Of a DNA stretch of 64,000 bases, positions 7,396 to 13,129 are shown in pieces. Position 1 is the first letter of the stretch, and each line of letters opens with the position of its first letter. The notes beneath the pieces are model-generated. The model ran no database searches. It saw nothing but the letters and a program-made list of their open reading frames with translations, and was not told the origin of the DNA. The translations under genes were made by a program, and so were the position numbers. The stretch is from Trichosphaerium sp. ATCC 40318. Taxonomy: Eukaryota; Protista; Tubulinea. Where the stretch lies: positions 248,001 to 312,000 of the forward strand of contig JALMLS010000397.1 of NCBI GenBank assembly GCA_038496445.1, read 5' to 3'.

Positions 7396-10300
7396 ATGGC
7401 GGCCGCTCGAGCCTTGAAGTTAGTGGTAGTGGGCGATGATGTTGAAAAAATAAAAACAAAACTACTTATTTCGTACACAACTGCCAAGTTTCCGTTTGAA
7501 TACGTACCAACGGTATTTGACAACTACAGCGGTGCGTATTTGATGTGTTTTCGGGTCTTTCTTGTTGTTTATTGAGTAACGGCGTAGCAAATATCAAATT
7601 TGAGGGTGAAACAATATGCCTGGGGCTATGGGATACAGTACGGAGCTATTCGTAAAAAAACGCCTGACCACTTTCTTTTTAAGCAAGGACAAGAAGGATA
7701 CGATAGACTTAGACCACTCACCTATCCAGTACATTCTAAAAGTACTTTTGTTTCGCTAATTAATTTTTATTTCAGCAAACGGACGTTTTTATTCTGATCT
7801 TTTCTATTGGCTCTCCTTCTAGCTTTCACAATATTTTAAGCAAGGTACGTTTTTATCTGCTGCTCAAAACTTGAGACCAACTACCAAAAACCAACATGTG
7901 CTCTCATCACAATTTACTACATTAAACACGTGCGAAAGCAATTACTCCTACAACCTTAGTTCTTCTAACTTGAAGTAGTGGCATCCGGAAGTTACTCACC
8001 ACGCGCCTGGTATTCCATATTTGCTTGTTGGTGGTCAACTAGAATTTAGAGATGACCCTGATAAGATTGAAGAGTTAAAAGCTAAGGGACAAGCGCCAAT
8101 AACTTATGACCAAGGTGGGTTTGTTTTTTCAACTATTCATATTAAACTTTTGATAAGGTCTTCAAATGGCGAATGATATTGGCGCCTTTAATTACATGGA
8201 GTGTTCAGCAAGATCTAGAATTAATTTAAATGAGGTATTCGAGGCTTGTGTAGGAAAAGTAGTGCATGCAGCGAGCGATGGTAAGTTTTTCGAACATTAG
8301 TTTAAAACAACATTCCCACAGTTTCTTGACGTACTGATCTCAAGATATTCATGCCTTCACAATAGCAGGGCTCTTTCAATATTTTCAAATTAAAATAACA
8401 CCTTTTGTTAGGTAATAAAAAAAAGAAGCGGAAAAAACTGAAAGGAACTGAAGTTAATTATATTGAAAACTTTTCTACAATTGCACCAACCATACCTTTC
8501 CAACGTGGTAAATTTCCAGCTGTAAAAATACTCATACTAGGACATGGTGGATCAGGTACACCCAATAGAGAAATGCTTCATTAGTTTATTGTTCTATTAG
8601 GTAAAACGACATTGCTTGACAAAATCGCAGTGCGGAAATCCAAGGGTGTAACACAATCGACCATATCACTTAACACGCGGGCTTTGAAACTAGTAAATAA
8701 TGTATCAAGTATTGCTTATGACTTTGGAGGGCAAATGGAGTATCTTACAAGCCACAAGTTCTTCTTTTCTGACAAGCACTCAATTTATATAATAATGGTA
8801 CGATTCTCCCTTTATTTAAATTCCTATGATTATTCCCGTCCTTGCGAGGCTTGACTTTAGAACGCTCCCTTATGGCTTGTAATTACTTACACACTTTGAT
8901 ATTAGGTTGATGTTTCCACAGACTTAGAGACTCAAAAGGAGCATGTACTTCATTGGCTTCAGGTTCTTGATACCAACGGTTTGTTGCGCCACGAAAAAAC
9001 AAGAAGTATAATTGTTGTGGGAAACAAACTCGACCTTGTCGAGGATCCAGACACTGCTATAAATGGCATAGTGGAAAATATTCAGAAACAGATTGACGAG
9101 GCTTTACAACTTCCAACAGCAGCTTCAATTACGTTTGGCAAGGATATGATTATGTCAGCACTGTCCAGTACGTCTTATTTACAACTTTCGTGTTTTTTCC
9201 TTTTGCTTGAAAAATCACAAGTGATGTCTGAAACTAGTGTTAAAGAATACTTCTTTCACATTCGATACATACCATCGCAAGAGCGGCTGTTATGTTTGTA
9301 GATCTCATTACTAATTTAGCTCAATTTTAGATACCTGCGTTGATAGATTCAAAGCTGCCTTGTCTACAAGTATTAAGTCTATCAAATCAACTTATCCTGA
9401 GCAACCACTTCTATGGCGTGCTATAGATTATCTACTGACTGAGTCTAAATTATTCTCTAAGAAGTCACAGACATTGTTTACAATGTACGTTTCAAAAAAA
9501 AACAAAAAAAAAACTGTCCATCTGAGAAATGCTCAAGCTGTTCTTTTTACTTTCTACATCTTGCTTTTTCATACATCTGATTTACTGGTTGGCTTAGAGA
9601 CGCTCTTCAACAATTCTTGGCTAAGAAATGTACAGACTCTGAGAGTCTATTGATAGACTCTGGCTTGAAAAGAGAGTATATAGGACACTACAAACGAGAG
9701 TTTCTTTGTAAAGATGGTGACGATAAACCTCAGCCCGAAAAGTCTAAAGCGCAGCTAGCATATGCAATTTCACATCTACATCGTGTAGGAAAAGTCATGT
9801 ATGATAGTGTACGAATGAGCTATAACACCTTTTCTCAAATAATCTTTTCTGTTTAAATAGAAAACAAAATCAGTTTGTTTGAATCCCAACACAATTGCTC
9901 GTGTCATTGCAAGTTTCATTGGTCCAGAGCAGCATATAGCACGATTGAACGGAAATATCAAGAGCTTGAAGACTTATCGAACGGCAATTATAAGTGATTC
10001 TGTGGCCATTGATAAAATCAAGGCTATTCCGGAGCTCAGTAAAATTACTGATCAGGAATGTGTGACTTTACTGTCTTTTATGGAACAAATCAATGTATGT
10101 TGCAAGTTGAATGAAGCAGAAGCCGTACGTTGACAAGAGTTATTGAGAAAATACAAAAAAGAAAGAACTAATGAGAAAAAAAAAAGGAACAATATGGTCA
10201 GCAAGGTTACTTGTTTTATAGCTTAAGACCAGAATCTGATATGATGTATATGCCACCACCTACAAACGACGATCATAATGAGACATTTATCAGTGACACT

Positions 10301-13129
10301 AGAGATGACAATGTCATTATGAAAGTACAACACACGACAAAAGGTGCAATTGAGATTTTTTTGCAAAATTACTTACAGCTACTAGGCGTAAAAGATATGC
10401 TTGGAGAGGAGATTTATGAAGAAGGTGCAATAATGATACGTTGAAAGTACTTATGTTTAATAGAGGGCAAAGAAACGTTAACATATCATTGCCTATCAGA
10501 GAAAGAGGGTATTAAACAAGTAATTGTTCCGTTTGCTGATCGTGATGATATTATTTTCCACAAAACCGTCAGAGTGCTTGCATTCAGTCTAAGTACACGC
10601 AAAGGAGCTATTACTTCTGATACGTTTAATGAACTTCAGGGGAGGCTTAGAAGTACGTGATTGTGGTCAACAATGAGCCAGGGTTCTTTTATTAACGTTT
10701 TGAATAGGATTCAAAGATGGTAGATATAAGTTGTTTATGAACTCTATGGTTCTTAAAGATCCTGATGGTAATGTAATATGCTTGTACTATAAGAATGGAA
10801 CGATAACTGTCGTTGTTCGTGGACTTGCTCCAAAGATGTGGAAGGTAAATACACGCTGACCTTGTATCTTTGTCTCACGTGTTTTAATTGTTGTAGAGTA
10901 ACCTTACAGCAGAACTCAACAAATTTGGCCTTAAGAGTTATCCTATATGTCCTTGTAGTGCTCAAATGGGTCAAGTAGTGAAATTAACTCAAGATGAAAT
11001 CAACAACGGTAGAAAGTGTACCTTTACCGGCCTCCAAATTAGCCGTGAAGAAATAGTTAATGGATTTCCTTGGCAGCGTAGCATTTCTGGCAATCCACTT
11101 TGGAGCACTGTCAGGTACAGCCACCCCTTGCTGAATAGCGTGTCTAATAAGTTCAAGATCTTCTATGATGGAAAAACGAACAGGGGAGCATGAGCACCTA
11201 TGGAAAAGGCAGGGAAACCTTCAATACACTGAGCTAACTATGAACGAAACATTTCAAGTACGAGCTCTTTTTTTTTTGTTTAGCAAGTTTCTCAGTTAAT
11301 GTACTTAGGACCGTAAAGAAGAATATCTTAGGATTCGTGATATGTTTTATACTTTTGTTGGAAAAGACAACACATCCTTGTTTGAGATGGAAAAGGCCAC
11401 AGTATTCCACAGCCCAGCAGTAGAAGAGAGGTTTAGCGGATTTTATTCTAAACTAGTACAACGAATGTTGAGGTCAGATAGCTCTCTTGCACGTGCACCA
11501 TCTGTCGTTACCAGTGAGTAAACTCAAGCATAATATACACAATAATGTTAACAGTATTCCTTAGAAGTACATCAAGATAAAGCACAGACGGAAAAGCAAC
11601 AGTGGCAGCAATGGTGATAGCCAATTTTTTTTCTCTATTAATTGTGTACTTAGGGTTTTGTCTCATTTGGAGAAATACTCTATGCGTGTATCAGGAAATG
11701 AACATATTAATCTGATCGCAGGATTCCATGGTACTTCTGAGGTACTAGATTCAACTTACAGAACGGAGTTTGTGTAACATTTCGGGTTAGGAAGTCAGCT
11801 TTAAAATCGCTGAAAACAATTTCTTGGAACCAGCGGATAAAGAACGGATGGGTATCAAGGTAACAGACCCTGGATACTTTGGTAATGGCATATACTTCAC
11901 TCAGTACCCTACATATGGTAATAAACATGAGAGACTCTTCTTTGCCCTAACAACAAGTTTAGGTTCGTTGTATGCTGAGACAAGAGAAACAGATAGCTTG
12001 CAGTGTATGGTTATTTCTTGGATTATGATGGGCACGTGTTATTTTAATGTACTATTTACTAATGTTTGTACCTTATTAGGTAAGCCTTATCCTGTCACAG
12101 AAGCACCTAATCCAAAAGATCCAAACACACTTCTTGGGAAGGGATTAGTTGTACGCTGGGTTTTTGTACTCTCGTTCTCAAGAAACTCATTTATCTCTAA
12201 GGATGGATATGACTCTCACTATGTTGTTGTAAAAAGTATGGATTCACGAGGTTTTGTACAGTGGCCTTGTCAACCTCATGAAGATCCGAATGCAGATGAG
12301 ATTGTCGTTTTCTCTAAAGACCAGGTACAGTAACACTGAAATTGCTCACTTAATAAAACCCTTCTAGATTCTCCCTCGATACCTTGTTTACTACAAGCGT
12401 GTTAATACAAATGTTGGTGAGAGTAACTCTGGATTGGTATTTACTCAAATGAAAGAGAAGAATTTAGAATGGCGTGATGCGGATAAGCTTGTTCTTTGGG
12501 TAGACAGTAACTTATCAGAGCAGAACAAAGTTTTGAAAAAGTCTATTGAATTGGCTAAAGGAAACATCAAAGTACTTGTCGTTGTCTTTGGTGTATTTGT
12601 GATGAGTGATGGTTAATGGGTTTGTTTAGGTTATTATTATGACTTCTTCTGTTGAGCTAAAAACTTGGCTTGAGAACGCTGCTAAGCATTTGAAAGGAAG
12701 AAACTTTATCATCATAACAAATAGATATAGAAAAACAGATGGTGGAGAAAAAGCAGCTAATAACCTTATTAAGTACGTTTGTTTAACATACATAGAGTTC
12801 ATTACATACTTATTTTATATCTTGCTGCCTATCATAGAGCAAAAGATCAACACTTTTATTTTTTTTTTTGCCTGTTTTGGCCTACAAACACAAACCTTGT
12901 ACCTCGTGGCCTGGTTCAGTGAAATTCAGCGCCTTGATTATATTTTTTAACGGTTTTTGTTAGGATGGTGCACAGTCAAAAAGAATGGAAATCTATTCCT
13001 ATTATTGTGTTTTGTGGTAATACAAAAGCAGCCAAAAATCTTGAAAAATCAAAATGTACAAAAGTTACAGATAAAGCAACTGATGTTTTATCATGGTGTA
13101 CCACTCTAAAAAAGAAACCATTTAAATAA
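7396..13129 (+). CDS. Multidomain Roco protein: degenerate Rac/Rho domain + Roc + COR + PARP-like ADP-ribosyltransferase + receiver-like C-terminal domain
   Basis: Hand-spliced frame: [22 protein letters not shown]|[15 protein letters not shown] (Rho); ILGHGGSG|[27 protein letters not shown] (Roc); [20 protein letters not shown] (COR-like); [37 protein letters not shown] (ART); [25 protein letters not shown] (receiver-like). Confidence 0.85.

Follow-up and report, generated by a model that had tools for sequence, protein, structure and literature searches.

A Rac-derived domain with altered nucleotide-binding motifs and conserved switch regions heads a Roc-COR-ART gene of Trichosphaerium sp.

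Results

Gene structure and expression

The window analysed here is the whole 64,000-nucleotide stretch (positions 248,001-312,000) of contig JALMLS010000397.1 from Trichosphaerium sp. ATCC 40318; it is eukaryotic DNA of ~37% G+C with short GT-AG introns. A plus-strand gene starts at position 7396 and extends to about 13129. Its first six exons, all of them with AG/GT borders, encode a Rac-like domain, with products of 45, (A)+16, 15, 23, 45 and (G)+40 residues, respectively. Exon 1 (7396..7531) carries the start codon, β1, a remodelled P-loop (GDDVEKIKT), α1 and switch I; exon 2 (7588..7637) encodes the β2-β3 hairpin and ends in LGLWDT, keeping Trp56, Asp57 and Thr58; exon 3 (7684..7728) covers switch II, in which Gly60 and Gln61 are kept and Ala59, Asp63 and Ser71 are replaced by Gln, Gly and Thr. 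β4 and the start of α3 follow in exon 4 (7776..7844; 23 residues), β5 with a degenerate G4 (LLVGGQLE, for LVGTKLD in Rac) and then the 13-residue Rho insert helix in exon 5 (7979..8114), and β6, the G5 motif (ECSA) and the C-terminal helix in exon 6 (8158..8280).

The spliced model was searched exon by exon, so that Pfam Ras scores refer to single exons only: 20.8 bits for exon 1 (E 3e-4) and 21.7 bits for exon 6 (E 1.6e-4), where the cut-off is 21.6. Taken together, the exon alignments give 60% identity to the host's canonical Rac1 (locus L003). The Ras matches in exons 1 and 6 and the identity to Rac1 together indicate that the resemblance reflects homology to Rac and is not due to chance.

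Downstream of this domain, exon 7 (8412..8555) encodes a polybasic linker, whose run KKKKRKK stands where Rac has its polybasic tail (the CAAX box being absent), followed by the first strand and the start of the P-loop of a Roc domain. The Roc Walker A motif is intact, with GHGGSG in exon 7 and KT supplied by exon 8 from 8601, as are the motifs DFGGQ and VGNKLD. The rest of the gene (8601..13129, plus strand) encodes Roc, a COR-like region, a PARP-type ADP-ribosyltransferase (ART) with the motif set FHGTSE / GNGIYF / ADEIVVF, and a receiver-like C-terminal domain. The Pfam Roc model matched one exon at 18 bits, short of its cut-off of 27, and single-exon searches of the COR, ART and receiver-like segments found no Pfam family; the names COR-like, ART and receiver-like rest on motifs and on paralog alignment.

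Public RNA-type spliced contigs aligned to 5,901 bases of the window. Fifteen listed joints run through the COR, ART and receiver-like parts, 14 of them with GT..AG ends. Towards the 5' end, one spliced contig stops exactly at 7531 and another begins exactly at 7979, its depth pattern being what a contig continuing across exon 6 to the linker exon would give; a separate contig connects 8553 to 8599, into Roc. Because these joints and ends fit the gene model, we conclude that one expressed transcript encodes both the Rac-like domain and the Roc protein.

G motifs of the Rac-like domain

The initial annotation had described a Rac-like head with an altered P-loop and G4 and near-canonical switches, and all four motifs that it quoted were recovered where it had placed them. 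The nine-residue G1 segment departs from the Walker A pattern GxxxxGK[ST]: relative to host Rac1 it has a one-residue insertion, Asp in place of Gly12 and Ile at the Gly15 position, with acidic residues occupying positions 12 and 14 and Lys16-Thr17 kept. G4 reads GQLE where host Rac1 has TKLD, outside the [NT]KxD pattern. Elsewhere the domain follows Rac closely. Thr35 of G2 is present, G3 conforms to DxxG(Q) as DTQGQE, and all phosphate and Mg ligands are retained (Lys16, Thr17, Thr35, Asp57, Gly60 and Gln61). Tyr32, Asn39 and Trp56 are likewise kept relative to host Rac1, G5 is present as ECSAR, and the Rho insert helix aligns without gaps to that of Rac. There is no C-terminal CAAX box: host Rac1 ends in CALL, and the present domain is internal, with Roc coming next.

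A family of Rac-derived domains with the same pocket change

Searches of the host's own 70-Mb assembly with exons 1, 5 and 6 and the last exon of the gene recovered ten or more domains of Rac origin that have this enlarged P-loop and an xQxE G4, as well as some 25 ordinary Rho genes. Members of the family have in common a P-loop signature (G-x-D-x-x-x-[IV]-K-x-x-L-L), a G4 signature (VG[AGSC][QRE]xE) and the family-specific residues Glu118, Ala146, Phe152 and Cys172 (Rac1 numbering), of which the last two lie in exon 6 of the window gene.

The family, putatively specific to this organism or its lineage, occurs in several architectures. One member (L043) stands alone, with about 205 residues, no CAAX box and identical exon phases; in another (L004) the domain is directly followed by a receiver-like domain; in L013 and in the tandem pair L023/L062 it precedes repeats and a SAM-like tail, L013 containing an in-frame stop. 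The Roc-COR-ART-receiver architecture is found in the window gene and in five others (L058, L059 and its near-duplicate L064, L060 and its near-duplicate L061), whose bodies are 50-75% identical to that of the window gene. In L058-L060 the helix of the Rac-like domain lies within about 12 residues of Roc β1; the linker of the window copy, polybasic run included, is about 45 residues long. In more distant Roc-COR paralogs (about 30% identity; C13, C443 and C590), MORN repeats lie 1.8-2.4 kb upstream, in the same orientation. These arrangements indicate that the N-terminal position in an expanded Roc-COR-ART family is variable, being held by the Rac-like domain in some genes and by MORN repeats in others. 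The presence of the same pocket change in stand-alone and non-Roco members likewise indicates that this change is old, and that the founder of the family already had the remodelled pocket.

Relatives in other organisms were sought by a profile search of a representative set, using exon 5 from four family members. This gave 3,881 matches; among the 150 listed, which were saturated by canonical Rho, nearly all were canonical TKxD Rho proteins or exon fragments, and no family member from another species was recognisable; so saturated a listing does not bear on whether such members exist. A word search with a 65-aa frame around exon 5, covering proteins of 36-114 aa and hence silent on longer relatives, yielded no candidate sharing three words. 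Only one listed match contains VGAQLEL (P0102, contig L063); as its flanking exons are canonical and the family residues are missing, it was rejected as a relative.

Conservation across paralogs

Nine distinct domains were aligned exon by exon with host Rac1 (L003) as the ruler. Positions kept in at least eight of the nine copies comprise Gly10, Lys16 (both invariant), the core strands, Arg68, Tyr72, Trp97-Pro99-Glu100, Glu118 of the variant G4 (8/9) and the G5 region, which on alignment grounds is a pattern of fold maintenance plus the P-loop lysine. The site-wise comparison of homologs that had been proposed as a check on a toxin-bait role for the switches went against that role at the level of the family. 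In the eight copies other than that of the window, the switches are less conserved than the remainder of the domain: pairwise identities average 0.11 in switch I, 0.31 in switch II and 0.40 in the rest (permutation p < 1e-4). Among the four same-architecture copies, switch I averages 0.03, versus 0.41 for the rest. Switch I of the same-architecture paralogs is unalignable and their switch II reads xESDPxRxxxYP. Thr17, Thr35 and Gly60 are freely lost among the other family members, and Thr35, Gly60 and Gln61 are all absent in L058-L060 (three to five same-architecture paralogs). Displaying Rac switches is therefore not the generic role of the domain, and only the window copy could serve it; by the same token, since these paralogs persist without Rac-like switches, docking through the switches is not the general function of the family.

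The near-duplicate pairs gave one further comparison. The Rac-like domains of L060 and L061 differ by 4 non-synonymous and 1 synonymous changes, versus 10 non-synonymous and 25 synonymous ones in the remainder (p = 0.043), a contrast that is suggestive only; L059 and L064 differ by too few changes for a dN/dS comparison to be informative.

The window copy as an exception

Compared with Rac1, the window copy is identical at 29 of 36 switch positions (81%) and at 68 of 123 positions elsewhere (55%; Fisher p = 0.0045). In intact Rho paralogs encoded in the same genome, identity is 44-62% outside and 63-94% within the switches; the pocket-altered window copy thus keeps its switches to the same degree as functional GTPases. 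The switch residues named in the initial annotation as targets of bacterial toxins (Tyr32, Thr35, Asn39 and Gln61) are indeed all four present, and among the nine copies they occur together in this one only. Of the wider proposal that a dead pocket with kept switches amounts to toxin bait, the degenerate G1 and G4 and the selected switches stand; the bait role itself is without support.

Recent gene conversion from a canonical Rac was considered as a source of the Rac-like switches and rejected: a DNA search gave no conversion tract, and among the Rac genes compared, the switch-coding DNA is identical at best at 30/42 and 34/45 positions (71-76%). At such identities the synonymous sites are saturated, and since the switches are nevertheless kept, they must have been under purifying selection.

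The window copy is also the slowest-evolving family member in every region, and is the only one to retain the ART histidine, so part of the switch retention may reflect this general slowness. Its identity is 60% with Rac1 but just 52% with the family member nearest to it. The similarity is split by exon, 1-4 being nearer to Rac and 5-6 nearer to the family, and an old mosaic origin is conceivable.

Discussion

A candidate docking module for a Rac-binding partner

[quoted passage not shown] GEFs bind nucleotide-free Rac most tightly. The laboratory mutant Rac1 G15A, which binds neither GDP nor GTP, has a high affinity for GEFs (PMC3408411). By analogy with that mutant, the changes in G1 and G4 suggest that the present domain would hold no guanine nucleotide. 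It would then act as a permanently empty Rac look-alike, whose kept switches I and II, Trp56, insert helix and polybasic tail could dock a protein that recognises Rac. As judged from textbook GTPase biochemistry, the candidate partner would be a Rac exchange factor; among possible partners a GEF is the most plausible because GEFs favour nucleotide-free Rac and because GTP could never release the domain. Candidate DH domains exist in this genome, one example being a RhoGEF exon about 19 kb upstream. Contact with the partner would in turn place or regulate the Roc-COR GTP switch and the PARP-type ADP-ribosyltransferase.

Alternatively, the domain might be an intramolecular partner of Roc, packing on it or mediating dimerisation and so tuning its GTP cycle, much as pseudoGTPase domains act within p190RhoGAP, with Rac-like switches as an inherited detail. 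We consider this unlikely, though several features of the family speak for it: the spacing of about 12 residues to Roc β1 in L058-L060 suggests a fixed tandem, the domain is kept in all six close Roc-COR-ART paralogs despite loss of the switches, and it is the fold core that is conserved. It sits less well with the long polybasic linker of the window copy and with the occurrence of the same domain type alone and in Roc-less proteins, and it leaves the retention of the switches in the window copy unexplained. Rather unlikely, in our estimate, is a nucleotide-dependent switch with an unusual pocket, perhaps of relaxed base specificity, in which the switches would be conserved because the domain still switches. 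In its favour, the full set of phosphate and Mg ligands and the ECSA motif of G5 are kept, and a variant G4 that is itself conserved, with Glu118 in 8/9 copies, does not look like random decay. However, the insertion puts Ile at the Gly15 position and acidic residues stand at 12 and 14, whereas the G15A change alone abolishes nucleotide binding by Rac1 (PMC3408411), and other members lose Thr17, Thr35 and Gly60 freely. Were the domain an inert relic of Rac, decaying and functionless, the in-frame stop in L013 and the suggestive pattern of changes in the L060/L061 domain would fit; with a reading frame intact over six exons of an expressed gene, strong conservation of amino acids despite saturated synonymous sites and persistence of the family in at least four architectures, this reading is scarcely credible for the window copy.

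The reading from which the initial annotation set out, an integrated decoy, would have a bacterial effector bind or modify the Rac-like switches and so set off the Roc-COR switch and the ART. Points in favour of a decoy are the complete set of toxin-target residues on switches kept by selection, the place of the domain at the variable N-terminus of the expanded Roc-COR-ART proteins, and its 60% identity to the host's own Rac1, a kind of protein that effectors target. Against these stand the age of the pocket change, which stand-alone and non-Roco proteins have in common with the window gene and which was therefore not born of decoy integration, and the sister genes of the same architecture that lack every toxin-target residue. 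Moreover, a role of the protein as an immune receptor is hypothetical, its architecture being what argues for one, and our literature searches found no integrated decoy of Rho type or of any other small GTPase. We therefore regard a decoy as quite improbable. A variant that fits the anatomy better would have the pocket-dead Rac irreversibly trap GEF-mimicking effectors, GTP being unable to release them. Extended in this way, the protein would be a natural 'GEF trap' sensor that captures Rac GEFs, GEF-mimicking bacterial effectors among them, and turns on Roc-COR and the ART, in effect an effector-triggered amoeba immune receptor with an integrated small-GTPase decoy; we offer this as a long shot.

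Relation to known systems

A close parallel to the proposed Rac mimic is Rac1 G15A, which is used in the laboratory for pulling down active GEFs: both have a Rac fold with intact switches, a destroyed Gly15 position and a P-loop that is unfit, or here predicted to be unfit, for nucleotide. The window domain differs in being natural, in combining a one-residue insertion with a changed G4 and in being fused to Roc-COR-ART, and GEF binding is here a prediction. Atypical Rho GTPases such as RhoBTB, Rnd and RhoH are not known to depart from a P-loop of canonical length and [NT]KxD, and mostly bind GTP. Their likeness to the window domain lies in a Rho-type fold with abnormal (here, predicted) cycling and, for some such as RhoBTB, in an N-terminal place within a larger protein; the window domain differs in having both G1 and G4 altered. 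PseudoGTPase folds with degenerate G motifs also serve as interaction or regulatory modules in other multidomain proteins, as in the pG1 and pG2 domains of p190RhoGAP (PMC5593906) and in AAGAB (PMC12490416). Those domains, however, have diverged beyond assignment to a family, whereas the window domain retains 60% identity to Rac1 along with the two switches.

Work on pseudoGTPases is recent, and in most known cases divergence has obscured what the domain once was. Here, a recognisable Rac appears to have had its pocket remodelled once and then to have spread into several architectures within one genome, with one copy still showing the partner-binding surfaces. The family may thus amount to a natural experiment on the use of a putatively nucleotide-free Rho domain.

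Plant NLR integrated decoys and the guarding of Rho GTPases by pyrin offer a looser likeness. In both, a defence protein is set off through the molecule that a pathogen attacks in its host, by way either of a duplicate of it or of its state, and a variable sensor slot beside an NTPase switch is similar to what is seen here. In contrast to them, an immune role of the present protein is hypothetical, the same-architecture paralogs have no bait surface, and the loss of the pocket is older than the fusion. Should the partner prove to be a pathogen effector, the domain would be the first case outside plants of an integrated small-GTPase decoy.

With Roco proteins, among them LRRK2 and Dictyostelium GbpC and other Dictyostelium Roco proteins, the window gene appears to have in common a Roc G-domain followed by a COR-like region. 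Our literature searches found no fusion of a Rho-type G-domain to a Roco protein, and neither a Rho-type G-domain nor an ADP-ribosyltransferase output occurs in any Roco protein listed by a review of the family (PMC6320773). The partner of the Rac-like domain would offer a concrete way into the question of what addresses or triggers a Roco protein whose output is ADP-ribosyltransferase activity. RhoGEF or RhoGAP domains tie several Roco proteins to Rho signalling (PMC6320773).

Sequence divergence and ART motifs in the Roc-COR-ART-receiver genes

Between the near-duplicate paralogs L060 (contig C403) and L061 (contig C111), which share the architecture of the window gene, we counted four non-synonymous substitutions and one synonymous substitution in the pseudo-Rac exons versus 10 and 25, respectively, in the remainder of the gene (p = 0.043, Fisher test, on small numbers). 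The synonymous divergence (dS) of this pair was likewise uneven, at 0.009 versus 0.058, and also rests on small numbers.

The PARP-type histidine of the ART domain (GFHGTSEV, window positions 11653–11739) was retained in the window copy alone, whereas the four same-architecture paralogs (L058, L059, L060, and L061) carried either AFSGTSEV or GFNGTSEV at this motif. Given the loss of the histidine from the motif, the ART domain of these paralogs may therefore be altered or inactive.

Pseudo-Rac genes of other architectures and a neighbouring RhoGEF-like exon

A short gene on the minus strand (L004, G000:C70:202100-205234) encodes a pseudo-Rac domain fused directly to a receiver-like domain, with Roc, COR, and ART all absent. 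This layout suggests a deletion derivative or, possibly, a regulator of the large proteins. Another paralog, L013 (G000:C1:392533-395667, minus strand), has a TAA in frame within exon 5 (locus positions ~1570–1566, VGAQLE*IDNPET) and, judged from this stop codon, is therefore probably a pseudogene. Two further genes, L023 and L062, lie in tandem on the minus strand of G000:C3 (740–750 kb) and are 84% identical over their pseudo-Rac part. In both genes, VSRQSWY.KPSSIDH.KVQFDADE-type repeats come after the pseudo-Rac domain (L062 having been read over its pseudo-Rac part), and L023 terminates, as does L013, in a SAM-like C-terminal stretch (DWV.VLKSAGFD...).

On the same strand as the window gene and ~19 kb upstream of it, an exon of locus L065 (4914–5318; G000:C37, ~235.9 kb) matched RhoGEF (PF00621) weakly, at 21.9 bits and under the cut-off. 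This putative RhoGEF is a possible candidate partner, although nearness proves nothing.

Rho-type domains in another sample and in other organisms

A 1159-base Logan contig from another sample (SRR24541088, L063) contains a Rac-like exon (567–782) with the G4 motif VGAQLEL. The exons on either side are canonical and the contig lacks the pseudo-Rac family residues; its G4 is probably an independent change. Among the matches listed (150 of 3,881), three proteins from other organisms (P0001, P0002, and P0003) had three or four Rho-type G-domains in tandem, some with a degenerate G4 (TNSD, SQID).

Introns of the window gene

The spliced joint at window positions 12030–12079 has GG..TA ends, probably an alignment offset; the other 14 listed joints are GT..AG. 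Between exons 4 and 5, the intronic stretch 7817–7932 is a dispersed repeat, with 78% identity to G000:C37:177428-177530 on the opposite strand.
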